Shown here in pieces: positions 5,333 to 64,000 of a stretch of 64,000 bases of DNA. The stretch comes from Orbicella franksi (Eukaryota): positions 7,006,001-7,070,000 of the forward strand of contig OZ116698.1 of assembly GCA_964199315.1 (NCBI GenBank). The letters are read 5' to 3'. The notes under the pieces are model-generated. The model was not told the DNA's origin. It searched no databases and was given only the letters and a program-made list of their open reading frames with translations. The position numbers were made by a program, and so were the translations under genes. The stretch's first letter is position 1. Every line of letters begins with the position of its first letter.

Positions 5333-8300
5333 TCATTTCTTTCCGTCGTCACCAGCCTCAGGCATGATTTTACACATCACAATCTTCTTGCCCTGGTTGC
5401 CATAGACAGTAAGGGGCTCTTTGAATCGGATGTTCTGGTCGACGTAAAGGCAAAGTTTCTCATACACATCGGGATAGTCGTTTTTCAGTCGGATTCCATA
5501 CTGTTTCAAATTCTTGGAAATGTTTCTGCAGTAATGTCTTCGCGCTTCGTTCTCGTTTACGAATTCATGTCGAGCGCACTTCGGCAAGTAAAACAGCTTC
5601 GTTTCAGTTTTTGGGTCGCTCGGAGAAGACGAGACATCCTCTTTGAGCTTGCTACTTAAGGGAATCTTGATCACTTGAAGAACGGTAGTCACTTTCCTCC
5701 GCGGAACAGGATTCGCTGGAAGGTTCTCCATCTTACCAGCAATGATGGCGAGATTGAGGACGAATTCCCCCTCGGGGTCGTAGTCCCTGATATTCTGAAT
5801 TAAAGCCACCCTGTGCTTGCTCACCACACCTTCCGCCTGTAAATCCTGCAAGGATGAGTACGTTGGAGGACTGGGGAAAAACGAGCAACCGGTGGTCATG
5901 AATTTGCGCGCCGACTGCGCAGACGCGAACGTTACCAGCACACAGCCACGTCCTTTCCTTTTGAATCCTTCTTTGGCCGCCTTAGAGAGCTGGAATTTCA
6001 GAGCTTCTTTCTTGTGGCAGAGATAAATGAAGGAGCGAATATAGCTGTTGATGCGACCGAAGAAGCAAACCTTCTTGTGTTCCGACCAGTGAATCCGCCT
6101 GCAGTTCCTTGTGCAGTAATATGTGAAACAAGCGGGGCAAGATGTATAAGTGGTTTTCTCGCCCGGAAACAAAACCTCCTCTTGCTCGCATCGAGGATTG
6201 GAACACTTCACAGTAGTCGTTGAGCCTCGCCGCATTCCCCAGTAAGGGACCTCCCCAGCAAACGAGAATTCCGACATTGGGCTCTGAGGGCGCGTTGACA
6301 ACGACGACACCGAGATATCATCAGGAAAGTCTCTCTCCCCCGCTAATGACATGAAACTGGCGTCGATGTTGGATCCGGGTTGAAAACGATTTGACGGATA
6401 CAGGAAAAGATCTGAAGTCATAAGATCGTCCTCATCTTGCTGTTCATTAGAATCCATCCAGGCGTTTTGACTGAGCCACTTGCGTGTATGAGCGCTCAAT
6501 CCCCGTAAAAACGGAGAGTCGTTTATCGGGTGCTGTCTTTTTGTCAAGTCCGGCATTGATTTTCGACTATCCGCGGCGTCCTTAAAACGCTGTTGGTCTA
6601 TATGGAGTCCTGGCATTATCTGAACGTCCTGGACACTAGTTCCTAGTCCCTTCTTTTGTAAGCTAGACCCCGGTCCTTTAGTTTGTGCACTAGATTCCTC
6701 ATCGGACTTAGGAGCGGATTTTTCCTCCGACCTCGCACGAGGGCGGCGGACGTTTGTCGTTCGCGAAAGAGAAATAAAGGCCGAAGTAAACTTGGTTAGC
6801 GTCTCCTTTGCCGCAGGAGGAGATCGTTCGGGTGTTTTATACGAGAACGATTCCTCCCGTGAAACTTCGCGCGCTCTGATTTCCGGCGTGCTTGAACCAG
6901 ATGAAGTAGCGGCCTTTTCATTCTCTAGCTCGGCAACAGGTGTGGCAGTTTTAGAAGATCCACTTGACTCGGTGCGATTTCGGGCTCCGATGTTAGCGGC
7001 TTCGAGAGCTGCCCTTGTTTGCCGATGGCGAGGTTTCAGCGGCAGGCTGCTCACAGATGACGTTTCGGAGTCAGCATCGCTGCTGTGTTTCCGCACAGAG
7101 TTGCCGTGACTGTTAGGGAAACCGTACGGTGGGTAATCCTCCAAGAAAACTTCATCCAGCTCGTCATCGTCATAACCATCGTTGACTAGGAAAGCTGAAA
7201 TCACGTTCGATTCCTCGTTACTAGCTGCCTCCGTGACAATCACAGGTTCGATGACAATAGGTTCTTCTGATTTGACGTGATGTATAACCAGATTTTCATC
7301 GTCGTCTTGCTCGTTACTGTTGATACGGACGGCTTTTTGAGGAACAGGTTCCATCCGCGCCCACACATGAACTTTCTCTGTGACTTCATGGGTTTCAGGG
7401 CTTTGTGGTCGCGGCTTCTCCTCTGTGACTGCAGCAGTTTGTTGAGCTAGTAAAGCGTCTAAATCTGTAACCATAATTCGGCTCTCTCCCAGAATTTCTC
7501 CGTCAAATGCATCCTCGATGCTGCTTAAGCTGCTTACGCTACGCTCGTTAACACCTCCCAGAGTAGAAACAGGATCAGAACGAACGCTGCCAAGGGTGTT
7601 AAACGCACTCGGAGTTCCGGCGTCATTATCCTTTATCTCTAAGCTTCCGTATCCAGACTCCCGACCCTGTCTGTAACGGACTTCTCTTATGGGCGATATC
7701 TGCGATACACGAGCTTCAATTTCACGTTCATCTCTCAGCTTTGGCAGTGTTTCCACTGTTGGCGATAAACGAGGTCGAGAAAATCTGTCCTCAGTTTGTG
7801 GCGGGACTTCCTCTGCAGGAGTTACACGTGCAACCCGGACTTTGATGGTGTTTCCCTTGGTTGCAGAATCTGAAATTTCTGTAACAGTCTCTCGCTCTAG
7901 CCACGGGATAGCTTCAACAACGGGCGACACAATCGGCGCACTAATTATTCTCTCCTGTGCCCTGTTTTCCTCGCTGCCATCGACGTCCTCGCGTTCTACC
8001 CGAGGTTTGGACTCCCTTGAAGATATCTGTGTCACACGAGCTTTAAATTCTCGCCTTGAAGTCTCTTTGTCTCTGATTTCTGTTACGTTCTCGTCACTTT
8101 GTGCTTCTCCCTCTTCCAATACTGGCATCACTCTGGCTTTAATTATTCTGGTCGGTGCGTCTTTTTCTGTCACAGATTCAAGATCTTGCAGTGCTGTCAC
8201 TTTGAGAATGGGTGATCTTCGAGGTGAAACAACTTGTTCCTCAGATATTGATTCTTCCATTTCAGGCAGTGACTTGCGGCGCGTTTTAACCTCCAATACA

Positions 8301-11300
8301 GGCAAAACCGTCGGACCCTTACGCCCTTCAACTTTTTTTTCTTCCTCGGCAAAACTCGCCAGTGCGTTTCCCAAATCGCTACGTCTTCGGGGCGGCGTCA
8401 CCGCCATTTTGATCGAATCAAGATCACTCAGGGACTTCCATCTCGCCTTTCCATGAACCTTCTTCTTCACGTTCAAAATAAGAATCCTTTGCTTGTCGCC
8501 TACGACCTCTTGAACAGTGATTTTAGCGGTATGAATAGAATCTGGCTCGATTAACTCTTTCACATCGTCCTCGGGAACACTTTGGCCAGCCTGGACGTTG
8601 TGCGTAGCAGGCTCCTCTTCTTGGATAATATCCTGCATTTCTCCCGGCGCTCTTTCAACAAACCTGAGATCTTCATGGCTCTTGCTGAGTCGTATGTTGC
8701 GAGATGCGAGGTAGGTCTTTCGAGGTTTCTTCTCCCAAGGTGTCGGCGACATCCTTGTCGGAGAGCGGACTCTTCTGCCTTCTCTATCCTCTTGCGAATC
8801 TTTTCCCTGAATGCTTATTGTAACAGGAGGTGACTCGGGTGACTGAACTTCAGTTTCTTCAGTTAAAGCAGGTTCTTCGCTAGAGCTCGGAGACAACATG
8901 CCATTTTCACTTGCAGTTTTTGAATCTTCTTTGCGCCTCTTTCCCGATATAAACAATTTCAATCCAACATTTGATCTCTTGGGTTTTGCTTGAATGTCGT
9001 CTTTTGTAACAGTCTTAGATACTTTATCCGTACGGTCACTTTTTGTTTGATCGTTTTGTGCGGGTACTTTCACAAAATCTTTCACGATCTCACGTTCTGA
9101 GGAGACGGCTTCAACGGACGACGCTCTGGCCTTGATCTCTGGTGTTATTTTTGGTTCGAGTTTAGCTTCCAGTAAAATGTCATCCTTTTGCGCAGGTGTT
9201 TGCGCAACATCGTTCGTGATACCACGTTTTGGGGCGACGGCCTCCACAGATGACGCTGTCGTCTTGATAGCAGCTGGCGTCGATGTCGTGTCGGGTTTAG
9301 CGTCAATTTGCGTTTGATCGCTCTGTGCAGGGAGTCTCTCGACATATGCTGTGACGTCACGTTTTATGACGTCTTCTTTGACCGATGACACTGTCGTTTT
9401 GATAGTCGCCGACGTCGGTTTCGAGTCGGGTTTAGCGTCAATTTGTGTTTGATCGCTCTGTTCAGGGAGTCTCTCAACATACGCCGTGACGTCACGTTTT
9501 ATGACGTCTTCTTGCACAGATGACGCTGTCGTCTTGATAGTCGCTGGCGTCGATTTCGAGTCGGGATTAGCGTCAATTTGCGTTTGATCGCTCTGTGCAG
9601 GGAGTCTCTCCACATATTCCTTAACGTTAGCTTTTATGATGTTTTCTTTCACAGGTAACGTTCTCGCCTGTATGGTGTCTGGCGTCGATTTCAGCTCGGG
9701 TTTAACGTCGTCATTAGTCGCATCACTCTTGGGAGGAAGGTTCTCGACGTACTCCTTGAGGACAAGTTTAGGGGTGTCTGCTTTCAAAGATGACTCATTT
9801 GCCTGGACAGTCTCAGGCGTAGATTTCGACTCGGGTTTAACGTCGGCATCCGTGAGATCACTCTCGGCAGGAAGATTCTCGACGCACTCCGTGAAGACGA
9901 CTTTAGGGATGTCTTCTTTCAAAGACACCTCATTCGCCTGTATAGTCTCAGGGGTGGATTTCGACTCGATTGTCATTTGATCGCTCTGTACAGGAATGTT
10001 TTCGAGCTGCTGCGTCACGTCACGTTTTGAGACGTCTTGTTCAACAGATGAAGATCTCGCCTCGATAGTCCTTGGTGTCGATTTGGACTGTGGTTTTGCG
10101 ACGATTGTCGTTTGATCGCTCTCTACAGGAATTGTTTCCAAATTCTGCGTCACGTCAGGTGTTGGTACGTCTTCTTCCACAAATGACTTTCTCATCTGGA
10201 TGGTCTCTGGCGTCGATTGCGAGTCAGGCTTGGCGTCACGATTTGTTTGACCGAGTTTCTTGACGTACTGCGTGACGCCAAGTTTTGGGATGTGTTCTTT
10301 CACAGGTGTCGTTTTCAGCTGGTTGGCTTCCGGCGTGGATTTCGATTCAGGTTTAGCGTCGATTTCCGTTTGATCGCTCAGTACAGGAAGTTTCTCGATA
10401 TCTTGCGTAACGTCTCGTTTTGGAACGCTCGCTTCTAAATACGAAACACTCGCCTTGACGTTCTCAGGCTTCATTTGCGACCCAGGTTTGTCGTCCACTT
10501 TCGTTTGAACGCTGTCTACGGGAAGTTTCTGAGCATCTTGCCTGACGTCTCGTTTTGGAACGTTCGCTTCTACAGACGAAACACTCGCCTTGACGTTCTC
10601 AGGCTTTATTTCCGATCCAGGTTTGTCGTCCACTTTCGTTTGAACGCTCTGTACAGGAAGTTTCTGAGCATCTTGCCTGACGTCTCGTTTTGGAACGTTC
10701 GCTCCTACAGGCGAAACACTCGCCTTGACATTCTCAGACTTTATTTCCGATCCAGGTTTGTCGTCCACTTTCGTTTGAACGCTCTGCACAGGAAGTTTCT
10801 GAGCATCTTGCCTGACGTCTCGTTTTAGAACGCTCGCTCCTACAGACAAAACACTCGCCTTCACGTTTTCAGGCTTCATTTCCGACCCAGGTTTGTTGTC
10901 CACTTTCGTTTGACCGTTCTGTACAGGTAGCTTCTCCTCATCTTGCGTGACGTCACGTTTGGGGACCTTGAATTCCACAGACGACCTGCGCGCTTTAAAA
11001 GTTTCAGCTTCGATTTTTGATTCGAACCTAGCGACCATTTTAGATAGATGCTTCTGTTTGGTTCGTTTAGGGGACATTTGAGTTATGTCACGTACTGGGG
11101 CTTCTTTTTGCGTGGGTGAAGTGCAGCTCTCGACGTTTTCGGCTCTAGATGTGTTGTTCATTTCTCTGTTATCATTCTTTGTCAGTGGTTTGCAAGAATC
11201 TTCTATTCCGACACTTTTCGGGGCGTCACCTTCTAAGGATAATGGGAGCACCTTGACAACATCGGTCACAATTTTTGATTCGGGCTTTGCGTCGGTTTTC

Positions 11301-14300
11301 GGGTTATCGCTTTGTGCGAGTGCTTGCGTGAGAAGTTGCGTGACGTCACGCTCTGGGGTGTTCTTAACGCTTACTTCGATAACCTCGTCCACGACTTTTT
11401 GTTCAGGTTTGGGAGGCGTGTAAGATTCCTTTTTGGGAATCATTTCCGTTTCCTTAGCAATAACCTCAGAAATGTCACACTGTTCTTCCTCAAAGTTCAT
11501 TGGCTGCGTGAAGTTAGCATCCGAGTCAATCTCAGCTTTGATGACATCGTACGAAGGATGCATCTTTGGTTCACGGCATTTCGGAACGATTTCTGCCTCT
11601 TCAACTTCTTTCCTCGCACTAGTTTCGTTACGTGCATTTTCCGTATCGATTTTATCTTTTTTGTGATCGCTAAATTCTTCAATCAACTGTTTTGGACTCT
11701 GAAGCTCCTGCTCGTCTTTAGTAATCATGACTTCCTTTCTGACAAAAATCTTGATTTTCTTTACAATTTTTACAGATCTTGTACTGTCTCCAACGACACC
11801 AATATCGCCGTTCACGCCATTGTAAGCGAACATTTTGTCCGACAGTTCAGGCGGTTCGTTTGACCTTTTTTGTTCGTCGCTGGCCACATCGATCACGCCT
11901 CCGATTTCAGGTTTTTCAGTCACGCCATTGCAAGAAATAATTTTGTCTAAGAAAACAGGTTCTTTTAATTTCTTCTCCTTCTCATTGGCTAAATTCTTTG
12001 CCTCATTGATTCCACCATTTTTGGTAAGGCCATTGTAGGTTATAATTTCGTCTAAGTGACTAGGTTCCTCTGGCAACTTTGGTTGATATCTCTTCTCAGA
12101 GTGTTCGTCAATTTCGGGGCCGGATTTCTCTGCTTCAGAACTGCTATGATCATCCAGGTCAAACTCAGAGTCACTGGCGTCCATGGTAGCAATAGGGGCC
12201 TGTAACCTGGGGTCTTTACGAACACTAAACTCATTACCATTGCTGTAATTAGACCCCGCTTGATCCCACAGATTGCTTTCGAACTCCTCTCCCTTATCAT
12301 CTTCTGCTGAGCTAATTTCTTCGTCTTCCGGGATTGTGTATAGACGTGGCTTTCGCTCACGCCTGTAGTCTTCGATAAATTCAGACCAGTCCTCGCCGTA
12401 ATAATCAAAACTAACATCATCAGGGTAATCTCTCTGATGGTCGTTAAGTTTCGACAGGACTAGTTCGCCATAAACACCATCCTTTTGAAATGAAACGTCA
12501 TCCATTAACGTTTCCACCTCGTAACTCTTTATCGAAGGCTCGAACTCTTGCAGCTCTTCACTTGGTTGTTTATCTAAACAATCGCTCAACTTTGAAGTGA
12601 CAATAATTGACTTTTGAATATTTATGTCTGATCCATCGTCAACATGCGTTGTCTCGGGTGCTGTAATAGAATAATTTGTTTCTTCATCTGATGATATTAC
12701 AGTACGCGTAGATGAAATATCAACATCTCTCTGCTCGACTTTGTCCACGGATAGATCGGTTTCCACTACGTCTTTGCTAGAATCGTCATTCACTTCGGCT
12801 TGGCCTTCTTCCGAGAGAATTTTGTCTAGATCTGTCACAGAAACGTGCCTTTTGAAATAAATGCTAAACTCTCCTTCGTCTTGTAGTTCGTCGCTGTCGA
12901 TCAAATCAACATCGTCAATATCAATGTCAGTTTCAAACGTGTCGGTTTCAAACGAGTTGGCGTATCGTGTTGAACCATTCATATCCATAGAATCATCGTT
13001 AGCGATTTTAATGTCACTTTTCAAACCATCGTCATAAGAATCGATAATTATTTTAGGAACTGCCACTTGATCGAGTTGTTGTTTCGGGCTCGAAATTCCC
13101 TTCTGTGGCTTGGTTGTTTCGTCGCTTCCCGACATGGAGAAAAACGTCCAGGCGTGTCTCGTGTGGTCATTTGTACCCGCTATTTCATCGACGAAACCCT
13201 TCAATTGAAAGTCAGCGAGATCGCTTTTGTTTATGTCCATTTTAATACCTTTTAATCCACTGGTGTCCTCCTCCGCTGAAGTATCGCTAAGCTCCGTGTC
13301 GCGTTCATTTTCAATGTTACCATGGGCATTTTCTTCGTTCTTTGAATTTTCGAAGCGGATATCACGTGTGAAATAACGATCCAGACCGTTCGGAGGACAG
13401 GAAATTTTCTGCTCATTTGATGCATGTAATTTGGGCTCCTCATTTGCATCTTGTTTGAGAGCTGGCGCAAGATCACAGCTCGATATTGTAAACAATGATG
13501 TGCTCTCGATCGCACTGTTGTTCACGTCAGAAACACTGTCCAGTATTGTTTCCTTCTCGTCTTTCGGTGCAGAAAAATCCAAACTACCGGAAGTGACTTC
13601 TGCAACAGTTCGGCACTTCGTTGGTATCGCGCTTTGTTGCGTGGAGATGTGACTTGCTGGCTCAGGTGATAGAATATTTTTAGAGTTTTCCGCATCTAAC
13701 ACTCGACAACGATTGTCAATTTCGGTAGATAACAAAGAAGAGCCGTTTTGTTCTATATTTACAGGTTCGGAGATTGATTTGACGATCGCGGGGTGGTTAA
13801 CATTCTCAAAAGCGAAAAGCGATTGCGACTCAGCGGGCTCACCAATAACAACACGATCTTCTTTCGGCTGCAGTTCCTTTGTCATGGTCTCGCGGCTTTC
13901 AATAAACGGGGCAAATTTTGTTCCACTCTCAGAAAGATCGAGCTTATGTTCTATATTCACTGAACTTTCTAACACTCCATCATTGTTATTAACTAGCTGC
14001 TTGTAGGCTGTAGGTAAATATGAAAGGTCGGCGCTAAACTTATCATCGACATCCGTGTCTTGAGATTTCTCGCTGCTTTCACTGTCACTATCCTCTTCAA
14101 TTTCTTCCTCTTCAACAATACTAGGTAAGAATCCAGGGAAGATAAGATCCATGTTTTCCATAGAGGGTCTTCGAGCGGCTGCCAGACCACTTGAACCATC
14201 AGACGATTCGAAACTTTCGTCATCCCACCCGTACTTTGAATAGTGAATGTGAATTTCATCGTCAATGTATTCGTAAACGCTAGACTCCTCTCTCTCCCCA

Positions 14301-14608
14301 CTCGGCGCCGAAGCAGCATTATCCAACGTGTCTTCTTTCGAAATATCACTCTTAAACCGAAGATCGTCGGTCAACTGTTCTAGAATTTTCCTCGCGACCT
14401 CCTCCTCTCGATCGATTTCCTTATCAGAAATTTGCCGACCGGCGGACCTTCGGATCGTAGCAATCTGTGTGATGTAAAACCACACGGTCACAATGAGCAG
14501 AAAAACAAACGCAAACGACCAGAATAAGATGGATATTTCTCCTTCTTCGGTTTCATCCTGACTCGGAATGTAGTCTTCCGCAGCCGAAGAAATCACCGCC
14601 ATCCACAT
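5333..14608 (-). CDS. AJM1: Apical junction component 1 (AJM1/AJM-1)-like protein, 3091 aa, single uninterrupted ORF
   Basis: The C-terminal ~290 aa (5333-6205) contain CSNPRC...CPACFTYYCTRNCRRIHWSEHKKVC (MYND-like zinc finger), then GRINS...KGRGCVLVTF...PPTYSSL...YDPEGEFVLNLAI and YGIRLKNDYPDVYEKLCLYVDQNIRF...MCKIM. I recognise this as the AJM1 (C9orf172) C-terminal architecture. There is a hydrophobic segment at aa ~26-50; the rest is acidic, Ser-rich and probably disordered. Confidence 0.85.
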   Translation of the reverse strand: MWMAVISSAAEDYIPSQDETEEGEISILFWSFAFVFLLIVTVWFYITQIATIRRSAGRQISDKEIDREEEVARKILEQLTDDLRFKSDISKEDTLDNAASAPSGEREESSVYEYIDDEIHIHYSKYGWDDESFESSDGSSGLAAARRPSMENMDLIFPGFLPSIVEEEEIEEDSDSESSEKSQDTDVDDKFSADLSYLPTAYKQLVNNNDGVLESSVNIEHKLDLSESGTKFAPFIESRETMTKELQPKEDRVVIGEPAESQSLFAFENVNHPAIVKSISEPVNIEQNGSSLLSTEIDNRCRVLDAENSKNILSPEPASHISTQQSAIPTKCRTVAEVTSGSLDFSAPKDEKETILDSVSDVNNSAIESTSLFTISSCDLAPALKQDANEEPKLHASNEQKISCPPNGLDRYFTRDIRFENSKNEENAHGNIENERDTELSDTSAEEDTSGLKGIKMDINKSDLADFQLKGFVDEIAGTNDHTRHAWTFFSMSGSDETTKPQKGISSPKQQLDQVAVPKIIIDSYDDGLKSDIKIANDDSMDMNGSTRYANSFETDTFETDIDIDDVDLIDSDELQDEGEFSIYFKRHVSVTDLDKILSEEGQAEVNDDSSKDVVETDLSVDKVEQRDVDISSTRTVISSDEETNYSITAPETTHVDDGSDINIQKSIIVTSKLSDCLDKQPSEELQEFEPSIKSYEVETLMDDVSFQKDGVYGELVLSKLNDHQRDYPDDVSFDYYGEDWSEFIEDYRRERKPRLYTIPEDEEISSAEDDKGEEFESNLWDQAGSNYSNGNEFSVRKDPRLQAPIATMDASDSEFDLDDHSSSEAEKSGPEIDEHSEKRYQPKLPEEPSHLDEIITYNGLTKNGGINEAKNLANEKEKKLKEPVFLDKIISCNGVTEKPEIGGVIDVASDEQKRSNEPPELSDKMFAYNGVNGDIGVVGDSTRSVKIVKKIKIFVRKEVMITKDEQELQSPKQLIEEFSDHKKDKIDTENARNETSARKEVEEAEIVPKCREPKMHPSYDVIKAEIDSDANFTQPMNFEEEQCDISEVIAKETEMIPKKESYTPPKPEQKVVDEVIEVSVKNTPERDVTQLLTQALAQSDNPKTDAKPESKIVTDVVKVLPLSLEGDAPKSVGIEDSCKPLTKNDNREMNNTSRAENVESCTSPTQKEAPVRDITQMSPKRTKQKHLSKMVARFESKIEAETFKARRSSVEFKVPKRDVTQDEEKLPVQNGQTKVDNKPGSEMKPENVKASVLSVGASVLKRDVRQDAQKLPVQSVQTKVDDKPGSEIKSENVKASVSPVGANVPKRDVRQDAQKLPVQSVQTKVDDKPGSEIKPENVKASVSSVEANVPKRDVRQDAQKLPVDSVQTKVDDKPGSQMKPENVKASVSYLEASVPKRDVTQDIEKLPVLSDQTEIDAKPESKSTPEANQLKTTPVKEHIPKLGVTQYVKKLGQTNRDAKPDSQSTPETIQMRKSFVEEDVPTPDVTQNLETIPVESDQTTIVAKPQSKSTPRTIEARSSSVEQDVSKRDVTQQLENIPVQSDQMTIESKSTPETIQANEVSLKEDIPKVVFTECVENLPAESDLTDADVKPESKSTPETVQANESSLKADTPKLVLKEYVENLPPKSDATNDDVKPELKSTPDTIQARTLPVKENIIKANVKEYVERLPAQSDQTQIDANPDSKSTPATIKTTASSVQEDVIKRDVTAYVERLPEQSDQTQIDAKPDSKPTSATIKTTVSSVKEDVIKRDVTAYVERLPAQSDQTQIDAKPDTTSTPAAIKTTASSVEAVAPKRGITNDVAQTPAQKDDILLEAKLEPKITPEIKARASSVEAVSSEREIVKDFVKVPAQNDQTKSDRTDKVSKTVTKDDIQAKPKRSNVGLKLFISGKRRKEDSKTASENGMLSPSSSEEPALTEETEVQSPESPPVTISIQGKDSQEDREGRRVRSPTRMSPTPWEKKPRKTYLASRNIRLSKSHEDLRFVERAPGEMQDIIQEEEPATHNVQAGQSVPEDDVKELIEPDSIHTAKITVQEVVGDKQRILILNVKKKVHGKARWKSLSDLDSIKMAVTPPRRRSDLGNALASFAEEEKKVEGRKGPTVLPVLEVKTRRKSLPEMEESISEEQVVSPRRSPILKVTALQDLESVTEKDAPTRIIKARVMPVLEEGEAQSDENVTEIRDKETSRREFKARVTQISSRESKPRVEREDVDGSEENRAQERIISAPIVSPVVEAIPWLERETVTEISDSATKGNTIKVRVARVTPAEEVPPQTEDRFSRPRLSPTVETLPKLRDEREIEARVSQISPIREVRYRQGRESGYGSLEIKDNDAGTPSAFNTLGSVRSDPVSTLGGVNERSVSSLSSIEDAFDGEILGESRIMVTDLDALLAQQTAAVTEEKPRPQSPETHEVTEKVHVWARMEPVPQKAVRINSNEQDDDENLVIHHVKSEEPIVIEPVIVTEAASNEESNVISAFLVNDGYDDDELDEVFLEDYPPYGFPNSHGNSVRKHSSDADSETSSVSSLPLKPRHRQTRAALEAANIGARNRTESSGSSKTATPVAELENEKAATSSGSSTPEIRAREVSREESFSYKTPERSPPAAKETLTKFTSAFISLSRTTNVRRPRARSEEKSAPKSDEESSAQTKGPGSSLQKKGLGTSVQDVQIMPGLHIDQQRFKDAADSRKSMPDLTKRQHPINDSPFLRGLSAHTRKWLSQNAWMDSNEQQDEDDLMTSDLFLYPSNRFQPGSNIDASFMSLAGERDFPDDISVSSLSTRPQSPMSEFSFAGEVPYWGMRRGSTTTVKCSNPRCEQEEVLFPGEKTTYTSCPACFTYYCTRNCRRIHWSEHKKVCFFGRINSYIRSFIYLCHKKEALKFQLSKAAKEGFKRKGRGCVLVTFASAQSARKFMTTGCSFFPSPPTYSSLQDLQAEGVVSKHRVALIQNIRDYDPEGEFVLNLAIIAGKMENLPANPVPRRKVTTVLQVIKIPLSSKLKEDVSSSPSDPKTETKLFYLPKCARHEFVNENEARRHYCRNISKNLKQYGIRLKNDYPDVYEKLCLYVDQNIRFKEPLTVYGNQGKKIVMCKIMPEAGDDGKK
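9040..10960 (-). repeat. Coding tandem repeat, ~14-15 units of 135 nt (45 aa), inside AJM1-like ORF
   Basis: Units such as KRDVRQDAQKLPVQSVQTKVDDKPGSEIKPENVKASVSSVEANVP and KRDVTAYVERLPAQSDQTQIDAKPD...; the DNA period of 135 is visible (cgttcgct at 10561 and 10696). Two units are shortened to 41 aa. Confidence 0.9.
11805..12070 (-). repeat. Three degenerate ~37-aa coding repeats (EPxxLDxIIxxNG) in AJM1-like ORF
   Basis: EEPSHLDEIITYNGLTK / KEPVFLDKIISCNGVTE / NEPPELSDKMFAYNGVNG. Confidence 0.65.
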
Positions 14609-45694: not shown

Positions 45695-48600
45695 ATGAAC
45701 AACATTGACCCAGGAGACGCTAGTGTCGATGTGCTGGCTCTGTTGCAAGAGCAACTCGAGGCTAGAAGCAAACCAACTGTTTTGATCGAGTCCACCGTTC
45801 TCCTAATCATCAATGTGGCCTCGCTGGTGGGGAATGCTATGCTGTGCTGTATCGTTTACCGCAATCACAGACTTCATAGTCCCACAACCATGCTAATTTT
45901 TGCGCTGGCCTTCACGGACCTGTTAACTGCGGTGACCGTGATGTCGCTAACAGTTGACGCTGCTATCTACAGCAAAAGGCGTTTCAGCGACGCCGTCTGT
46001 AAAGCGCACGCTTTCGCTACGGCCGTCCTGGCTCAGGTCTCCATTTTCATCATGGCTTTTACGGCTTTCAATCGTTACGTGTGTGTTAAGAAGCAAACCC
46101 TCTACAGGAAGATCTTCACTAAAAAGAAAACGCTCCTGCTGATCTCAGCTATCTGGGCCATAGCGCTGATCACCAACGGCATCCCCAATATCCTGTCCTT
46201 GGATGACTTCTTCTTCTGCCCGGGATATCTACTGTGCTGGAGGCGAATGATGGCTCCAGCCGCTATTGTCTCGTTCAACGCCTGGCTTTATGGCTCCTTC
46301 GTCCTCTCCTACGCAGTGATCGTGGTCTGCTACTGGAAGGTGTTCCGCACCGTGAAGCGACACAACGCAGCCGTTGCCCCGATTCTGAGCCAAACCAGTC
46401 GAGCTGGCAACTATTCTGAGGAAGCATCGGTGGCCAGGTCAGTAGCAGCCATCATCTTTGCATTCACCATCTGCTGGATCCTGTCAGAAGTGATGGACAC
46501 GATGGACAAGATTAATCCACTTCTTCTGCCTCGTCAGGTAAGCAGACAAGCATTTCTCCACTACCCCAAGGATTCGAACTTTCCATTTAACTTGTAACAA
46601 GCGTATTCGTTTGTTTAATTTAGTTTAAAGCTGCTTTTTCTAATTTTGGTAAGTAAGAAGCAAGTAACAAACTGTCCGGAAAAAAAAAAAAAAAAAAAAA
46701 AAAAAAACATAAAAAAAACTTTTCGTTGACAGGAGACCCCAAACAGTTAACTTTCGCGCTACATACTAACAAAGTTATTCAAAATGTGAAAAGAAAAATG
46801 CAGGACAGTGCATGCAGGAAGAAGAATATATGTTCAATACGTTTCCTTATCTTTATTATAATTCAATGCCAAGAAATCAGATACAGAAATATTAAAAAAA
46901 AAGCCACCAGGATAATTTATCAAGTTTTTTTGTGAAATTGAATATTTCAGGAACCCAGCTAATAGATAGGCAGCAAATATCACGAAGAAGAAAATAGAAG
47001 TTTGTTCCTATAAGGTTTTTTAACATTTCAGTGTTTCCTCGCTGCATGCGATAATGTTACTTTGATATCAATATTTCAATCTTTCCAGGAAGTATTCAAT
47101 AATTTCCAAACGTTTCCTGTAGTACAAGGACCGCGTTTTTGCACCTTTGTCGCGCTTTTCCAGTCCGTTTGTGGTGCTCTTTGCCCGCTTCATGCAAGAA
47201 TGGAAACTTACAATGAAATGGTGACAGTAGGACTGTTGTAGGGTTTCATTAATTAAACGTGCCTTAAATGTAAAATGTCGCATTTTTTTCGCATCGTATC
47301 CGACAGATGTAGGTAATTCGTGTCGCAGACTTGTCGTAAGATTGCAAATTGTTCAGTAGGCGACGAGATTGCATATTGTCTAAATCGCTTCGTCTTTAAT
47401 GAGAGCATCATTTTGTAAGGCACAGTTTTCCCCGACTGATGTATCTTGATTTTTGCCTGGCAAGTTTCGGTCCAATACATTATTTGTTAGGATGTGAATT
47501 TTTCCCAATATAAACGAAAAAGTTTTACAACCACAGGCATTTATGACAAAAATTAGTAAAAGCATAGTTTGGGAGGGTCAGCCCGGGGATACGATCAATC
47601 GTATAGACCGTGCATCTCCAGTGCTCGCGAAAGAAAAAAATATCCACTATGCCATCGAAAGAGATGTATTCCAAGAAGCCCTACACTCGGTATACATTAG
47701 CATTCATCTACGAGCGAAACACGTGTTTATTTGAACCTTTAACCTTGTGGAGGCGAAAAGCAAAGCAAAACGCAAAATGTTTCAATAGACGGATTGCATC
47801 GACTAAAAGAAGCACAGTTACGTTTGATGATGAAAGCATAAATCTTGATAGGAGATTTTCGACATGGTTTTGCGCGCGTGCTCTCAAGGGCGCATTAAAT
47901 CTCCACGTGTGGTTATATAATCATTTTACCCGGTCAGTGGTTAATTTATGTGACAGGGAATTTATCTGTGCTCATCTCATAGACAGCGATGTCTATACTT
48001 GAGATACGAGGAACAAAAGACCGCATCGTATTCGTTAACGAGTAACGACCATGAAGGTGGCGACCTATTGAGCCGCAAAGAACAAACTAAGCCACCAGGA
48101 TAATTACTTTTGAAATATCAAGTCGATTCCTTTTGCCTGTTTTAGTTCTTGTTTTTCAGTTTCAAAGCAATGACGGTAAACCTTTAATCAGAGCTGTCAT
48201 TTTGATGTAAACGCAAAGTGATTCATTTTCAAATTCAAAGCGTTACTTTGATGTTATAATTTCCAGTTTTTACAATAGATCAGTTCTGATGAATGAATGA
48301 ATGAATGAAAGACTTTATTTAAGTGTCACAAGTATTTAGCTTTAAAGAAAACTATAATGATAATGTAATGAAACGATCACTACTCAGTTAATAGTAGGTT
48401 CAAATCCCAATTATGTTAATTTTGACCAAGTCTTTTACATCCTTACACGATATTTAGTAAGAAAAGGGTATGACAATCAGGCTTTGTTGTGAGTGAAGTT
48501 TAGATGCAGATCTCACTGGAAGACCCCATAATCAAAAGCAACCCATGTGTTTCCAGTTTTTTCCCTTTTTTTTTCAACTTGAAAATTTGGCAGTGAAACA

Positions 48601-51852: not shown

Positions 51853-51943
51853 TATAAATAACTCGTCAGTTCAGCTTGTATTCAGTTGCAATTACTTCAG
51901 TGATCGAAGAAGTACTCTCTGCTGTTCACTAAACGCCAATAAG
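51853..51943 (+). promoter_or_regulatory. TATA box + Initiator + non-coding first exon, peptide gene copy 1
   Basis: TATAAATA 51853-51860; Inr TCAGTT with A at 51884 (31 nt downstream); the exon ends AAG|gtaaga at 51943. Confidence 0.75.
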
Positions 51944-52113: not shown

Positions 52114-53141
52114 ATGAACAAGTTTTGGATCGCAATTCTCTTGATGTTTGTTATTACATCTCTGTTGATCGATGACAGGTAATTTTCATAGCATCACGTA
52201 AACTGTAGATTCTCTCAGTTTTCTTCCTGAACCTTGGGTAATACTTTTCTTTTTAAAAAGAACTTCTTTAAACTCCGGATAAAAATCTGTAGAATGTCTT
52301 GGATAGAATGTACTGACAAAAATGAACTAATTTATAATTGGTCAAGAACGCAAGGACTTACTCCTTCTGTAGTTGCAAGTCAGGCCCACCTTAAAGATCA
52401 GCAAGTGCTAGATGTGGAACAATTAACGTCCTTGCTTAATGAACCATTTTAAAAAAAAGTATTAAGACTCAGTGGAAGGTCAAGCGCTATTCAGGATACC
52501 ACTGATTTCAAGAGGGATAAGATTAAAACGTTCGAGGTGACTTCGTCGTCTAATTTCAGACTAGAAAGGATAAAGGAGGACTTTACATTGTATGGTTTCT
52601 TTCTTTCAGGGGTAGTTTTAAGGGTTTCAATTTATCTTACCTTCGATTTTAAAATATTTCATTTTCTAACAAATGATTAAAAATAAACTGAAGGATTTTT
52701 ATTTATGAATTCGGAAGGAGTTTCTTTTCGTGTCGAATTTTGGATTTGTACTGTCTCCGTCTGTTTGTTTGGCAACCTGTGCTATTTTTTGTTACGATAG
52801 TTTCTATAGAGCTGTTTATGCGAAACCTTTTGAATCTGCTCCAGAAGCATATCACCTAGATCAAGGTGATAAGCTTATGATCTGCTCTTAACGCTTCTTA
52901 TCCGGCCAAATCTTAGATTTGCTGTAATCTATAGTTGTTGCTTTTATTTTTCAGTGACGCTTGGCGAAGACGGCGTCGACGGCGTCGTAATGGTAAGATG
53001 GACGAAAACGAGATGCCAGTCTCCGCAGATGTTAGCCAGGAGGAGATTCCAGAAAATGCTAAACAAAGCATCATTGACGCTCTTACTGATCAGGAAGATG
53101 AAGCAGAGGAATACGACATTCATCCAAAACACGCCATTTAA
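52114..53141 (+). CDS. Secreted poly-arginine peptide precursor, copy 1 (83 aa)
   Basis: Coding exons 52114-52178 and 52955-53141 (phase 2, AG|gtaatt...tttcag|T) give MNKFWIAILLMFVITSLLIDDSDA-WRRRRRRRRN-GK-MDENEMPVSADVSQEEIPENAKQSIIDALTDQEDEAEEYDIHPKHAI*. Kozak aagATG; AATAAA at 53268. Confidence 0.88.
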
Positions 53142-53689
53142 AAGAACTGCAGGACAATTTACACAAAGAATTGAAAATATCACGCACATCAAAACTTGAT
53201 CAAGCTTCCTTTATTTTAACTACCTTAATTTCAATTTTTGTTTGCAAATTGTTAGCATATATTTTGAAATAAATGGTTGATAAAGTGTTTTAATTGTTTG
53301 TTTTTGTTGTTTCTGTTTTCAATTCATCAAAACTTTAATAACAACAGTCGAAGTTACAACCCTCCCTTACAGGGCTAGTTGTTATGACACAATATGCAGT
53401 AAGAACTTACACCACTACATGAATACTATAACGAGGCCTTTCAAGATTTGGAAACCACTTAAAACTATCTTGAAAACACAGGCCTCGAGAGAAAAAAGTT
53501 TTTTATCGCCTATTTCCGACGGAAGTGGAAAGAAAATTTAAGAGCTGTGTCTTTGAGCTTCTTGTGTTGAAATTATATGACGAGCTGGTTGAAAAGTGGC
53601 GGTAAAATGTGTAGCGAAATAACAAAACTAGCCGTTTAAAGTTGGGTTTTACATTGAACTTTTTTTGTGTGCGATTTTTCAGGTGTCTC

Positions 53690-57100: not shown

Positions 57101-57191
57101 TATAAATAACTCGTCAGCTCAGCTTGTACACAGTTGAAATTACTTCAGTGATCGAAGAAGTACTCTCTGCTGTTCACTAAACGCCAAGAAG
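57101..57191 (+). promoter_or_regulatory. TATA box + Initiator + non-coding first exon, peptide gene copy 2
   Basis: TATAAATA 57101-57108; Inr variant ACAGTT with A at 57132 (31 nt); donor AAG|gtaaga at 57191. Confidence 0.72.
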
Positions 57192-57357: not shown

Positions 57358-58583
57358 ATGAGCAAGTTTTGGATCGCAATTCTCTTGATGTTTGTTGTTG
57401 CATCTCTGTTGATCGATGACAGGTAATTTTCATAGCATCGCTTAAACGGTAGATTCTCACAGTTTTCTTCCTAAACCTTGGGTTAAACGTTTCTCTTTAA
57501 AAGAATTTCTACCTTAAACTCCAGATAAGGATTTGTAGAATGTGCTGTATAGCATGCACTGACAATAATGAACTAATAAGTAATCGGTCAGGAACGCAAG
57601 GACTTACTTTCGTAGTTCAACCCACGTCCTTACTTAATGAACCATTTTAATAACGTATTAAGACTCACTTGAAGGTCAAGCGCAGTCCGGGCTACCACTG
57701 AAAAGGGAAAGGGATAAGATTAGAAAGGGTCGTGGTGATTTCAGACTAGAAAGGATAAAGGAGGACTTTACATTGTATGGTTTTTCTCTTTCAGGGGTAG
57801 TTTTAAGGGTTTCAATTAATCTTACATTCGATTTTAAAATATGTCATTTTCTAACAAATGGTTAGAAAAAAACTGAAGCTCTTGTTATTTATAATTTCTG
57901 AAGGAGTTTCTTTTCGTGTCGAGTTTTGGATATGAACTGTCTCTCTCTCTGTTTGGCAACCTGTGCTTTTTTTTGCTACGATAGTTTCTATAGAGGGTGG
58001 TAAAGGGGGGGGGGGGGGGTATAGATCACGTTTCACGGAAAATAAAGCAGCCCTTTCACAATTCACGAAAAATACAACATTGGCAGTTTACGCTTCACGG
58101 AAAAGAAAAGAGAACGTTTTGGAAAATCACGGCTCACGGCAACTATGGATATCACGATTCACGAGGAAAAAAAATGGCATTTCACATTTCACAGGAAATA
58201 AAATGGGCCGATCACGGGTCACGAAAGTACCCTTTACCGACCCTCTCTATAAAGCTGTTTATGCGAAACCTTTTGAATCTGTTCCAGAAGCATATCACCT
58301 AGATCAAGGTGATAAGGTTATGATCTGCTCTTGATGCTTCTTAACCGGCCAAATCTTAGATTTGTTGTAATCAATAGTTGTTCCTTTTATTTTCAGTGAC
58401 GCTTGGCGAAGACGGCGTCGACGTCGTCGTAATGGTAAGATGGACGAAAACGAGATGCCAGTCTCCGCAGATGTTAGCCAGGAGGAGATTCCAGAAAATG
58501 CTAAACAAAGCACTATTGACGCTCTTACTGATCAGGAAGATGAAGCAGAGGAATACGACATTCATCCAAAACACGCCATTTAA
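57358..58583 (+). CDS. Secreted poly-arginine peptide precursor, copy 2 (83 aa)
   Basis: Coding exons 57358-57422 and 58397-58583 give MSKFWIAILLMFVVASLLIDDSDA-WRRRRRRRRN-GK-MDENEMPVSADVSQEEIPENAKQSTIDALTDQEDEAEEYDIHPKHAI*. AATAAA at 58710. Not shown in the ORF track. Confidence 0.88.
57993..58245. mobile_element. 253-bp MITE in intron 2 of peptide copy 2
   Basis: TCTATA|gagggtggtaaaggg ... ccctttaccgaccctc|TCTATA; the empty site tttctatagagctg is present in copies 1 and 3; about 13 internal TCAC(G) repeats. Confidence 0.85.
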
Positions 58584-61285
58584 AAGAACTGCAGGACAAT
58601 TTACACAAAGAACTGAAAATATCACGCACATCAAAACTTGATCAAGCTTCGTTTATTTTAACTACCTTAATTTCAATTTTTGTCTGCAAATTGTTAGCAT
58701 ATGTTTTGAAATAAATGGTTGATAAAGTGTTAATTGTTTGTTTCTGTTGTTTCTGTTTTCAATTCATCAGAAATTTAATAACAACAGTCGAAGTTACAAC
58801 CCTCCCTCACAGGGCTAGTTGATATGACACGATATGCAGTAAGAACTTACACCACTATATGAATACTATAACGAGGCCTTTCAAGATTTGGAAGCTACTT
58901 AAAACTATCTTGAAAACACAGGCCTCGAGAAAAAAAGTTTTTTATCGCCTATTTCCGACGGAAGTGGAAAGAAAATTTAAGAGCTGTGTCTTTGAGCTTC
59001 TTGTGTTGAAATTATATGACGAGCTGGTTGAAAAGTGGCGGTAAAATGTGTAGTGGAATAACAAAACTAGCCGTTTAAAGTTGGGTTTTACATTGAATTT
59101 TTTTGTGTGCGATTTTTCAGGTGTCTTACCGCTAGCTGGATTTGTTCTTGGTAGTTCCGAGTTCAACTCCTCGATCGGGTTGTGTAAACTGAGCCAACTG
59201 GTCAACTTCCCACTAGTTGGGATTCTTAATAGTTTAGGTTCTGTTTGAAATATTTGTTTATTCTTTTACAGTGTCCCCAATTACCACAACAGTGCTAACT
59301 ACATTTGACATTTATATAAAGTTATTGGTTTATTTTATTTTATTTACCTTGCGGTAATAATCTGGTTTTCGGAAGAGGTTTGGTTTGTCATAATATTATA
59401 TTTTCGATGTTTGTGTAAATGATTTAGTTAAAACGAATACCCACTGCATTATCGTTGTATCTGAGATGTTGTCTGTTTCAATAAAAGTGTAGCTGTACAT
59501 TATCTTGTAAGGTTTTTTTTTTGAGTCCATTTGTCGAGGTAGAGAATGAGTCCTGAGTCACTGAGGCAATGCTATCCTGGTTTGAAAAATTCTCATTAAC
59601 ATGGTTTACTGCCATGAACAGATAACCGTTAATCCGCAAGTCATAATTATCAAGTTGAATCAATAGACAGCGCAATTAATGTAAACTTAAATGATAACGT
59701 AAATACCTCCAACTGTTAAAGTCTAGAATACAATACGTGTCGTTGATTGATGTGCTTTCCCTTTATATAGTATTTTACCATGTCTTACCTGGGATAAAAT
59801 AATCTGAAAATTGGGCTTACGAATTAAGGTTGTAGTTGTGATTACTGTTAGGGTTAGGATTTTTGCTGAACTTGGAAACTCGGATCATGGAGCATCAAAG
59901 GAACTGAAGAATCTTTGCCCAGAGTGGATTCTCCGAGCGATCTTGGATTAATTTGTTTAGTAAAGAAACGCAAAATCCGTTTTTGCATTTTAGAATCCAA
60001 TCTTGGATTTTCTTAGAGAAACGCATCCTTTGAGTTGGGGTTATGTAAGGATACCGCTGGTGTACGAGCTTATTATCGTTGACTGTACGTTACGTTCAAC
60101 GCTTTTTTGAAAATGGCTTGGTCACCCAGTCTTTTTGTTCAAATCACCTACACACGGGAGGGTGATGGGATATTGATTGTTCACTCAGGTAGGTTTAATT
60201 GTTACGATGAACAATATCCCTTCACCCATGCCACCTGGTGTATGCATAATTTGGCCTGTAACATGGTAACCCAAATACTTTAAAATATCTGGCTATGATA
60301 AATTGTTCGGACTTCGATTTCATCTTTTTTTCTTTTTCAGAAGGAGACTTTAAACTTTCTCTCGGACAAAACTTATGATAAAAGTGCTGCATTTTAATGA
60401 AATGTTTGAAGATATTTCGAGACTACTTATTACAACTTTGCAAACAAATCTTGCCCATTCTTAACATACGAGTTTACTAAAAATAACTCTTGGTTTGCGC
60501 AATCAGTCATTCACCAGTAGCGTGACATTTTGGTTGTTAAAGATGGTGTTGTGGTAATCACGCCATACAAATGGACAATTAAAGAAACAACCACAATTGG
60601 ACATCATGGTTAGTTTCATTATTGGTGGCGATTTTAAACGTCGAAAAAAAACTACCACTAAAATAGCAGGTTAACTTGCATGCATAATAAAAAAAAAAAA
60701 AAAATTAGCAAACTCTAGCAGAGCGAAGTTCGATTATTAGTTTACCATACTGGGTTAGTTATAGAAACAGTGTTCCCCCTGACAATCGAAGCTTCTCATT
60801 CCCAACTTCTGTAATATATTGCCAAATGTCACAAATTGTGCTATTAAATTGGATAAAAAGTTTTTACATAAGTGCAGGGACGGAAGTGATCTGTCAGTGA
60901 GATTTGTTTAGTGAAAGTACGTCAAAATATTGTCATTCTGGTGTAAATTCATTTCACGCAAATCATGTTTCCCCTTGACGAAAAGGCCATTCAACAACAA
61001 GCCATATTTGGTCTAAGTATACGATTCCATTCTACTAGGTCAGATGTTATGGTGGTATTCTCACCAACGAGGCACCTGTGACAAATTTTACAACTCGGTA
61101 CTACACGCTTTGATTTATCAATTAAAAGTGACTATCTTGTATTTCAAAGTTGTTGAGAAATGCACAACACAGAAGAAGCTTTCTGGTCGGCAAGAAGATG
61201 ATTGAACAAAGACTCATAATTTACCAGTAGCAGATGGTTGTCACCAAATCATTAATCGTTATATAACAACACTAAACTCAGGCAA

Positions 61286-61376
61286 TATAAATAACTCGTC
61301 AGCCCAGCTTGAACTCAGTTGAAATTACTTCAGTGATCGAAGAAGTACTCTCTGCTGTTCACTAAACGCCAAAAAG
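61286..61376 (+). promoter_or_regulatory. TATA box + Initiator + non-coding first exon, peptide gene copy 3
   Basis: TATAAATA 61286-61293; Inr TCAGTT with A at 61317 (31 nt); donor AAG|gtaaga at 61376. Confidence 0.75.
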
Positions 61377-61543
61377 GTAAGACGAAAATTGAGTATCAAG
61401 TCCTTTCTGTTTTTTGCTTATTCTGCTCAAACATTCCTGTGTCCCATGAATAAAACGTTCTCACCTTAGAACTGAAGGTAATAACTGTCGACGGATAAAC
61501 ATCAAATGTAATTGTTATTTTATTTTATACAGAGTTTATCAAG

Positions 61544-62524
61544 ATGAACAAGTTTTGGATCGCAATTCTTTTGATGTTTGTTGTTGCATCTCTGTTGATC
61601 GATGACAGGTAATTTTCATAGCATCACGTAAACTGTAGATTCGCTCAGTTTCCTTCCTAAACCTTGGGTTATACGTTTCTTTTTAAAAAGAATTTCTTCC
61701 TTAAACTCCAGATGAGGATTTGTAGAATGTGCTGTATAGCATGCACTGACAATAATGACCTAAAAGGTAATTGGTCAGGAACGCAAGGACTTACTCCTTT
61801 TGTAGTTCAGCCTGCGTCCTTACTTAATGAACCATTTTAATAACGTATTAAGACTCACTTGAAGGTCAAGCGCAGTCCGGGCTACCATTAAAAAGGGAAA
61901 GAGAAAAGATAAAAAAGGGTCGTGGTGATTTCAGACTAGAAAGGACAAAGAAGGACTTTACATCGTATGCTTTCTTTCTTTCAGGGGTAATTTGAAGGGT
62001 TTCAATTAATCTTACATTCGATTTTAAAATATTATATTTTCTAACAAATGGTTAGAAATAAACTGAAGGTTTTTTTTTTATTTATAATTTCTGAAAGAGT
62101 TTCTTTTCGTGTCGAATTTTGGATGTGTATATACTGTCTCTGTCTGTTTGTTTGGCAACCTGAGCTATTTTTTGCTACGATAGTTTCTATAGAGCTGTTT
62201 ATGCGAAACCTTTTGAATCTGCTCCAGAAGCATATCACCTAGATCAAGGTGATAAGCTTATGATCTGCTCTTAACGCTTCTTAACCGGCCAAATCTAGGA
62301 TTTGCTGTAATCTATAGTTGTTGCTTTTATTTTTCAGTGACGCTTGGCGAAGACGGCGTCGACGTCGTCGTAGGGGTAAGATGGACGAAAACGAGATGCC
62401 AGTCTCCGCAGATGTTAGCCAGGAGGAGATTCCAGAAAATGCTAAACAAAGCATCATTGACGCTCTTACTGATCAGGAAGATGAAGCAGAGGAATACGAC
62501 ATTCATCCAAAACACGCCATTTAA
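61544..62524 (+). CDS. Secreted poly-arginine peptide precursor, copy 3 (83 aa, W-R9)
   Basis: Coding exons 61544-61608 and 62338-62524 give MNKFWIAILLMFVVASLLIDDSDA-WRRRRRRRRR-GK-MDENEMPVSADVSQEEIPENAKQSIIDALTDQEDEAEEYDIHPKHAI*. AATAAA at 62651. Confidence 0.88.
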
Positions 62525-64000
62525 AAGAACTGCAGGACATTTTACACAAAGAACTGAAAATATCACGCACATCAAAACTTGACCAAGCTTCGTATATTTG
62601 CACTACCTTAATTTCAATTTTAGTTAGCAAATTGTTAACATATATCTTGAAATAAATGGTCGATAAACGGTTTTTTGTTTGTTTCTGTTTTTTCTGTTTT
62701 CAATTCATCAGAAATTTTCATAACAACTGTCGAAGTTATAACCCTCCCTTATAGGGCTACTCGTTATGGCACAATATGTAGTAATAACTTACACCACTAT
62801 ATGAATAATATAACGAGGTATTTCAAGATTTGGAAAAAACTTAAAACGATCTGGATAAGACTGGGCCTCGAGAAAAACCCAAAGTCTTTTTTATCGCCTA
62901 TTTCCGACGAAAGTGGAAATAAAATTTAAGAGCTGGGTTTTTGAGCTTTTTGTGTTGAAATTTAATGACGAGCTGGTTGAAAAGTGGCGGTAAAATGTGT
63001 AGGGAGATGACAAAATTAGCCGTTAAATTTGGGATTTACATTGATTGTTTTGTTCAATTTTTCAAGTGTGTTATTTCAGCCAAACTGAAAGATTTAGTTT
63101 GAGTGAGGTTTGTCGTGACGTCATGATTACCCAAAAAGCGAGGATAGATGTGAGTGTTTTTTACTGAATCAAGTCGCTTCTTTTAATTCTACGCACGATT
63201 TCGTGTTAAAACGTTGCCACATCACACTTTGAGGTGGTCTTTCCATTGACATGGATTGTTTTATGATGAAGGAAAAATTAAAAATTTCAAACGAGTGTTA
63301 CATACATGATACATATTCTGTTCACGACCCATAGGTCCACAGGTCTACAGGCTTACACCTCCTGCTACATACATGATAGCCATTCTGTCTACATCCCACA
63401 ATTAATTTGCTTTGTTAAGGATGAGCCTTGCTGACCATTGCATTATTGATGTTATCCATACTCACAAATAAAATCTGCATTCCGTTCTTTTATTCCTGTT
63501 GACGACATCGCTCGGCGTAAGTTAATTTAATGAAAAACTTTCTTTTTAATGTTCCGTAAATACAAAGTACCATCAAAAAAGAAGAACCGCCTCGCACCTT
63601 ATCATAGAATTGTAAACCTCTCGGACTTAGTAGACTGCTCCCAGTCTGTTTTTCTCTCGAAATTCAGCAGGGATTATACCGCCCTTTTGCGTTCGCGATA
63701 AATAAACACTGGTCTAAGTGACCCTTAGAGAACACGGCCTCCAGCAGTCTAATTTATGACCCTCAGTCTGTGTAGTTTAGACTGAACATACCACTTCCCT
63801 CTCCTCTGCGAGATTTACCAATAACAAAATGTTGCTTTTTATGAAGCAAGTTCGAACTCGACTCAAGTTCGAGTCCTTTAGTGTTGTTACAAAACAGTTA
63901 ATGATTTGGTGACAGCCATCTGCTGCACGAAATTACGAGTTGTTGTTCAATCTTCCTCTTGGTAACCAGAAATAGTCGTCTGTATTGTGCGTTTCTTGGC

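Follow-up and report, generated by a model that had tools for sequence, protein, structure and literature searches.

The genes described here lie in a stretch of 64,000 nucleotides (nt) from the coral Orbicella franksi (GenBank assembly GCA_964199315.1, contig OZ116698.1, positions 7,006,001 to 7,070,000 of the forward strand), referred to below as the window, and the described systems closest to them are cationic host-defence prepropeptides that carry an anionic extension and the single-copy preprohormones of Anthozoa. A layout of signal, cationic peptide and anionic extension is found in the precursors of tachyplesin/polyphemusin, gomesin, clavanin/styelin and piscidin/pleurocidin. The prepropeptides of the mussel myticalins are likewise composed of signal, cationic peptide, a site of Gly plus basic residues and an anionic extension of 42-54 amino acids (aa) (PMC12294457). 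Among the preprohormones, Antho-RNamide was isolated chemically as (phenyllactyl-)Leu-Arg-Asn-NH2 and its precursors read ...T/G-D-A|F-L-R-N-G-R-D-E..., which documents for sea anemones a cut after x-D-A in front of an aromatic residue, a cut at Gly plus one basic residue, and amidation of Arg-Asn (PMC7523074); the family has reportedly not been found in Scleractinia. Oligo-arginines count as man-made reagents, used as cell-penetrating peptides and furin inhibitors, and poly-arginine is still classed as synthetic in a 2026 preprint about natural cationic penetrating peptides. Here we present a gene family, with three copies in the window, whose predicted product is a secreted, amidated peptide of Trp and eight to ten consecutive Arg; the argument is drawn from sequence analysis and from comparison between species.

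The core of copy 3, D-A-W-R9-G-K, is encoded at window positions 62339-62380 (+, as are all features of the three genes) by the codons GAC GCT TGG, CGA AGA CGG CGT CGA CGT CGT CGT AGG and GGT AAG, and is followed by M-D-E-N-E and the remainder of an acidic tail (62381-62521, net charge -13) that extends up to a TAA stop codon (62522-62524). Two further copies encode D-A-W-R8-N-G-K at 52956-52997 (copy 1) and 58398-58439 (copy 2), and a 20-mer probe gave three matches in the window against 0.00 expected by chance. An earlier note on this DNA had described an Arg run ending in (N/R)-G-K in all copies, with a ninth Arg replacing Asn in copy 3, and this can be read directly, the sole change between the core of copy 3 and those of copies 1 and 2 being AAT to AGG. 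All three are part of direct repeats of about 4-5.4 kb each. A slipped triplet repeat as the source of the Arg run was considered and rejected, since CGA, AGA, CGG, CGT and AGG all occur among the Arg codons, which vary synonymously between species.

Each copy constitutes a complete gene model for an 83-aa protein, made of a 24-aa signal-like segment ending in S-D-A, the stretch W-R8/9-(N)-G-K, and a 47-aa acidic tail. A short upstream exon, placed about 730-780 nt 5' of the Arg exon and starting with ATG at 52114, 57358 and 61544, encodes M-N/S-K, a hydrophobic core of 16 residues and D-D; its donor (AG|GTAATT) and the acceptor of the second exon ((t)nCAG|T) are placed such that joining creates the Ser codon of S-D-A-W. 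Coding exon 1 of copy 1 (52114-52178) thus reads M-N-K, 16 hydrophobic residues, D-D and 2 nt of the Ser codon, that of copy 2 (57358-57422) starts with M-S-K-F-W-I-A-I-L-L, and that of copy 3 spans 61544-61608. The second coding exons, stop codon included, lie at 52955-53141, 58397-58583 (with one Ile-to-Thr change in the tail) and 62338-62524. In copy 3 the tail can be divided into the M-D-E-N-E start, an amphipathic helix near A-K-Q-S-I-I-D-A-L-T-D, and the end E-E-Y-D-I-H-P-K-H-A-I. All three copies are intact from TATA box, ATG exon and GT/AG splice sites to stop codon and AATAAA, the latter 127 nt 3' of the stop in each case (53268-53273, 58710-58715 and 62651-62656). A TATAAATA box, putatively a promoter element, stands about 260 nt 5' of the ATG at equal distance in all three copies (51853-51860, 57101-57108 and 61286-61293). 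A non-coding leader exon is probable for each copy as judged from its sequence; in copy 3 it is predicted at 61316-61376, with its start placed according to the TATA box, a donor aaaaag|gtaaga at 61376|61377 and an acceptor tatacag|ag at 61532|61533. The copy 3 intron also contains a 35-nt element (62225-62259) that is present in copies 1 and 2 as well. Numerous RNA reads and contigs that are otherwise unrelated carry it between different flanks, with 47-52 such reads in a single raw-read run. It probably belongs to a dispersed repeat that is transcribed, and assemblies break at this element just 5' of exon 2.

Outside the window, about 45 relatives were found in total, comprising sequences from other corals, Oculina gene models, plankton transcripts and one gene of the brachiopod Lingula anatina. 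A word-indexed search returned 40 of them, none informatively named, and four of these are spliced gene models on a single chromosome of Oculina patagonica. A profile search added three sequences from plankton metatranscriptomes, in which a signal segment ending in D-S-E-G runs straight into W-R8-S-G-K, as well as the Lingula protein XP_013381668.1, which reads ...A-D-S-D-A-W-R8-N-G-K-K and in which the 15 residues S-D-A-W-R8-N-G-K are identical to those of the coral. When the Lingula protein itself was used in the word-indexed search it matched only itself, and a plankton transcript matched its two sister transcripts. The alignment between Lingula and the family profile reached 97.6% probability over 47 columns and included the tail helix motif I-I-D-x-L-x-D. 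The Lingula gene lies on a 654-kb contig of that species, its first intron is displaced by 5 nt from the coral position, and contamination of the assembly with coral DNA was rejected because the gene's introns and Arg codons are its own and a diverged tandem paralogue accompanies it. This paralogue (LFEI02000130.1, 12852-13260) is located 6 kb 3' of the W-R8 gene; its signal exon is 94% identical at the nt level, while the second exon encodes A-S-R4-L-V-Q-N-K-R-V-A-D-A-N. The signal exon that both share thus serves diverged basic peptides in Lingula.

A Pfam search with four full-length members found nothing above the cut-off, an ESM Atlas search gave only weak leads (<0.8; pleurocidin, frog-skin peptide, apelin and GnRH precursors), and a literature search found no report of the motif, of the Lingula accession or of a natural oligo-arginine peptide. 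The family is real but undescribed, with neither a Pfam match nor a publication found. This pair of exons is found again at other coral loci, in many cases in tandem arrays. A 20-kb contig of another coral (ENA ERZ25067556) holds at least three copies in mixed orientation together with an orphan signal exon, and its intron measures about 150 nt vs. about 730 nt in the window. Across the compared loci the exons stay constant, while the genes vary in number, orientation and intron length.

In support of the earlier note, the layout of signal, W-Rn-(N/S/Q or none), G-K and acidic tail proved to be conserved in about 40 relatives. For motif statistics 37 relatives could be parsed, and the three window copies were counted apart. 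The Arg run comprises eight residues in 22 relatives, nine in six and ten in seven (8, 8 and 9 in the window), while the remaining two carry 14-residue Pro/Arg-rich variants in its place. The residue in front of Gly is absent in 15 of the 37, Ser in 14, Asn in five, Gln in one and Pro in two. G-K itself is present in all 37 and in all three window copies, and about six divergent sequences are without it; a single Lys follows Gly in most members (G-K-M), and G-K-R or G-K-K occurs in 3/37. Trp is the first residue after the signal in 33/37 relatives and in 3/3 window copies. The tail measures 46-60 aa with a charge of -11.4 ± 2.4, the head carries +9 to +11, and on these calculated values the one roughly cancels the other. 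Two proteins from coral metagenome contigs (P0013 and P0021), in which a Pro/Arg-rich stretch takes the place of the Arg run, read R-K-R-P4-...-R3-P-G-K with the tail in frame and resemble proline-rich antimicrobial peptides; one possibility is that CGC repeats came to be read in their CCG frame before the original frame resumed.

Between the window and other coral loci exon 1 is 90-95% identical at the nt level and exon 2 about 70%, whereas introns and flanks did not align with distant coral loci except for a promoter patch (61192-61300 in copy 3), the sole non-exon stretch that aligned to a distant coral locus (about 71%). Nonsynonymous (dN) and synonymous (dS) divergence were estimated with the Nei-Gojobori method separately for core and tail. 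The core S-D-A-W-Rn-x-G-K gave dN of 0-0.05 at dS of 0.45-2.1, and the acidic tail dN of 0.33-0.72 at dS of 1.3-1.7 (dN/dS about 0.25-0.45). As core dN is far below tail dN, the Arg peptide with its flanking processing sites is the most constrained part of the protein, above the tail. In the tail, M-D-E-N-E is kept, the amphipathic helix is common to Lingula, and E-E-Y-D-I/L-H-P-K-H-A is shared by scleractinians and lacking from both Lingula and the plankton transcripts.

By its features the N-terminal segment resembles a signal that is cleaved. In 11 full-length proteins it is 24-25 aa long and consists of an n-region with one or two Lys, an h-region of 15-16 residues and a c-region of four or five polar residues; Ser at -3 and Ala or Gly at -1 are present in 11/11, including Lingula and the three plankton transcripts, where Gly at -1 is a conservative swap for Ala. 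Trp stands directly after S-D-A as residue 25, and S-D-A|W was predicted as the cleavage site from the -3/-1 rule and the anemone precedent. The exposure of Trp by a cut after S-D-A, which had been suggested before, is in line with these conserved positions and with the x-D-A precedent, the exact site being assigned by rule. An AlphaFold2 model of an Oculina member (predicted TM score, pTM, 0.26) was disordered except for an N-terminal hydrophobic helix, continuous over residues 3-26 at low confidence, and one helix in the tail.

On this basis we tentatively favour, at somewhat less than an even chance, the view that the chief functional product is a secreted W-Arg8-10-(x)-amide, with the acidic tail as its intramolecular neutraliser and escort. 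Signal peptidase would cut after S-D-A and expose Trp, an endoprotease specific for basic residues would cut at the conserved G-K, a carboxypeptidase would take off Lys, and peptidylglycine amidating monooxygenase would convert Gly into a C-terminal amide. The Arg run would survive these steps, yielding W-Arg8-10-(Asn/Ser/Gln or none)-NH2, whose activity would come from charge density and one aromatic anchor and not from an exact sequence. Until cleavage the tail of 46-60 aa would neutralise the polycation and escort it through the secretory pathway. The most likely action would be electrostatic binding of extracellular polyanionic targets, as in host defence. A C-terminal amide would shield the Arg run from carboxypeptidases acting on basic residues, and this protection supplies a rationale for the invariant Gly. 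The variable run length and end residue, combined with a strict minimum of eight Arg plus Trp, seem to fit charge-driven action better than a shape-specific ligand. The reading of Gly plus a basic residue as an amidation signal held in that G-K is conserved and that anemones amidate R-N at Gly plus a single basic residue, the amidation here being predicted; overall, the first reading in the earlier note, a natural oligo-arginine amide, is partly supported, the killing of microbes, the carriage of cargo into cells and the condensation of polyanions being conjectural roles.

Both ends of the proposed processing have an anthozoan precedent, given the cleavages and the amidation of the Antho-RNamide precursors. 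Like these precursors (about 70 aa; PMC7523074), the coral proteins are small, have a signal ending in x-D-A followed directly by an aromatic-first peptide, may carry a peptide ending in R-N in front of Gly and a single basic residue, and are encoded by several gene copies per species; in Antho-RNamide precursors D-E comes after Gly and the basic residue. The Antho-RNamide peptide, however, has four residues (FLRN) vs. 10-12 in the coral family, its Phe becomes phenyllactyl, and its tail is not strongly acidic. Homology between the two was tested with hhalign (family profile vs. Anthopleura FLRN precursor) and rejected at a probability of 0.15%. With the myticalins the family shares the tripartite layout, a Gly before the basic site that is read as an amidation signal, and a multi-gene organization (PMC12294457), but myticalin mature peptides are hypervariable and lineage-restricted and their site is dibasic K-R, vs. 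a single Lys in most members here. A rapidly diversifying mature peptide was not found in the coral family (core dN 0-0.05 at saturated dS), and the Pfam search with four members gave no homology to myticalin-type precursors. The coral family would work like anionic-extension prepropeptides and anthozoan single-copy preprohormones and is a member of neither, because it lacks homology, an N-terminal protecting residue and a diversifying mature peptide. The coral precursor resembles the engineered 'activatable' cell-penetrating peptides, whose polycation is tied to a polyanion via a cleavable linker. With 8-10 consecutive Arg, the predicted peptide has the six to eight or more guanidinium groups (approximately) expected of a short cell-penetrating peptide. 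Similar to synthetic R8/R9 and Arg/Trp peptides, it contains at least 8-9 consecutive L-Arg, Trp and a predicted C-terminal amide, features known to raise uptake and convertase inhibition (PMC4482483, PMC11394684); unlike these laboratory designs, it would be gene-encoded and supplied with a built-in acidic partner. Among known precursors of such kind, the predicted product appears to be unprecedented.

Several points weigh against the favoured product. The mature W-Rn-x-amide is a predicted product, and the L-Arg run is itself a chain of multibasic convertase sites that could be fragmented, while a single Lys, not Arg, after Gly is a weak convertase P1 residue. Seawater ionic strength weakens charge-driven killing. 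Eight Arg directly past the cleavage site make the C-terminal flank of the hydrophobic segment strongly positive (+5 to +6 vs. +2 to +3 on the N-terminal flank), and under the charge-difference rule such a flank could invert the topology. The tail holds conserved motifs of its own, and would hence be more than a counter-ion, and the near-invariance from coral to brachiopod is unlike that of fast-evolving antimicrobial peptides. Furin can cleave L-nona-arginine, though the latter is still a potent inhibitor (PMC4482483, PMC11394684). Transcript data add to these points: no splice joint was present in four RNA-labelled runs placed on window 61300-62800, and a degenerate scan for spliced junctions among JGI metagenome contigs gave 13 matches, all of them GC-rich bacterial chance matches. 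A contig from one RNA run starts 55 nt inside the intron and continues through exon 2 to 62721, and in another RNA-labelled run the whole intron is covered at 1/3 of exon-2 depth, a ratio consistent with DNA of three copies collapsed into one. The exons drew no reads from two raw-read runs, though these may not contain O. franksi. Expression of the family is supported in relatives only, by the three plankton transcripts, the Lingula RefSeq model and the Oculina models; because spliced forms are absent among the database proteins of many coral data sets, low or restricted expression is suggested.

Among the alternatives, the strongest is that the same processing yields a hormone or neuropeptide, with W-Rn-x-NH2 as ligand of a specific receptor (e.g., a class-A G-protein-coupled receptor, GPCR), as in anthozoan single-copy preprohormones. 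The layout matches the precursors of Antho-RNamide, -RIamide, -KAamide and -RWamide, families that also have 2-4 gene copies per species, copies 1 and 2 would end in R-N-NH2 as Antho-RNamide does, and conservation across phyla is typical of neuropeptides. An open reading frame (ORF) for a rhodopsin-type GPCR lies about 5.5 kb 5' of the array, but no GPCR was seen beside the arrays at three other coral loci, and the adjacency may therefore be chance. C-terminal residues usually define neuropeptide recognition, whereas here the amidated end residue varies (R/S/N/Q) along with the run length (8-10). An N-terminal protecting group (pyroglutamate, X-Pro or Phe-derived phenyllactyl) is absent, Trp standing there with no Trp modification known, and besides the unsupported homology to Antho-RNamide precursors the family is missing from the cnidarian and brachiopod neuropeptide catalogues that were checked. 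A charge-matched acidic tail, moreover, suggests a peptide hazardous to its own cell, and taken together we consider the receptor ligand unlikely. Somewhat less credit still is due to an endogenous inhibitor of furin-type convertases. The 7B2 C-terminal peptide and proSAAS are small secretory proteins in which a basic segment blocks a proprotein convertase, and in a comparable role oligo-Arg would fill the acidic substrate cleft, either as the free amide or as the Arg run within the precursor, in the secretory pathway or beyond it; both the role and these forms of it strike us as improbable. L-octa-arginine and L-nona-arginine inhibit furin with Ki values of 61 and 42 nM and PACE4 with 150 and 110 nM, and amidation and an added Trp raise the inhibition, although PC1 is inhibited only at the micromolar level (PMC4482483, PMC11394684). 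A conserved enzyme cleft would explain the invariance between coral and brachiopod as well as the tolerance of 8-10 Arg and of different end residues, and the secretory pathway would bring inhibitor and enzyme together automatically. Yet the Pfam search with four full-length members gave no homology to 7B2/proSAAS, the argument for inhibition here draws on the Ki values of synthetic L-poly-Arg, and tandem multi-copy genes meet no obvious need for an inhibitor.

Two further readings deny the Arg peptide its role as a secreted product. If the Arg run served as a multibasic module for cleavage or sorting, the functional product would be the acidic tail (or its helix or C-terminal motif), and the conserved tail motifs, a dN/dS that still indicates constraint, and the plentiful R-X-K/R-R sites in the run are all compatible with this. 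However, with the signal cut at S-D-A|W, a propeptide made up of just W and Arg8 would serve no purpose, as signal peptidase could free the tail unaided; four residues make up a furin site, which does not call for an invariant W-R8-10-x-G-K; no role falls to the conserved Gly in front of Lys; and the C-terminal motif is restricted in its distribution as described above. The earlier note had offered this as its alternative, with the Arg run merely a furin site, and the far stronger purifying selection on the core than on the tail argues against it, leaving it about as improbable as the convertase inhibitor. Least probable of all, and by our judgement highly so, is an uncleaved signal-anchor (N-out, C-in) in which poly-Arg would be a cytosolic, juxtamembrane stop-transfer or lipid-binding patch with a cytosolic acidic tail, entailing no secretion and no amidation. 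Such an anchor would be consistent with the much more positive C-terminal flank, with the unusually conserved hydrophobic exon and with the continuous helix in the AlphaFold2 model. The uncharged core, though, has only 15-16 residues in 11/11 full-length members, short of the approximately 19 expected for a bilayer-spanning anchor, and is flanked by Lys and by two or three acidic residues; its summed apparent free energies are borderline on the scale values that we assumed. The -3/-1 residues are conserved across phyla, with the Ala-to-Gly swap included, and a cytosolic protein would give no reason for a conserved G-K.

If the favoured product is real, the W-Arg8-10-amide family would be a natural counterpart of the R8/R9 reagents. 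A more specific version, which we regard as rather unlikely, is that a Trp-oligo-Arg amide has been kept almost unchanged since before the split of corals and brachiopods because it targets a conserved host molecule, the most attractive candidate being the acidic cleft of furin-type convertases. It would then be a natural inhibitor and/or a cell-penetrating peptide with an acidic safety catch, and animals would have arrived at the 'synthetic' R8/R9 tools long before chemists did. The family would also add to coral and brachiopod genomes an unannotated group of secreted peptides that most gene sets miss. The paired polycation/polyanion precursor would offer a natural model of charge-masked peptide delivery, and its product would be a simple, synthesisable molecule of relevance to coral immunity, symbiosis, settlement and proprotein processing.

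Two other ORFs of the window were characterized. The GPCR gene upstream of the array is an intronless ORF of 300 aa at 45695-46597 (+) that matches Pfam 7tm_1 (E 5.6e-32, profile positions 1-228 of 260), and the solved structures closest to it are those of receptors for neuropeptide FF, NPY, orexin and amines (E ~1e-13). On the opposite strand, an uninterrupted ORF of 3091 aa (5333-14608, -) is rich in Ser, Glu, Lys and Asp and contains a MYND zinc finger near residues 2809-2848, as well as about ten tandem repeats of 135 nt (45 aa) at 9149-11044, a unit of which includes, for example, V-P-K-R-D-V-R-Q-D-A-Q-K-L-P-V-Q-S-V-Q-T-K-V-D-D-K-P-G-S-E-I-K.

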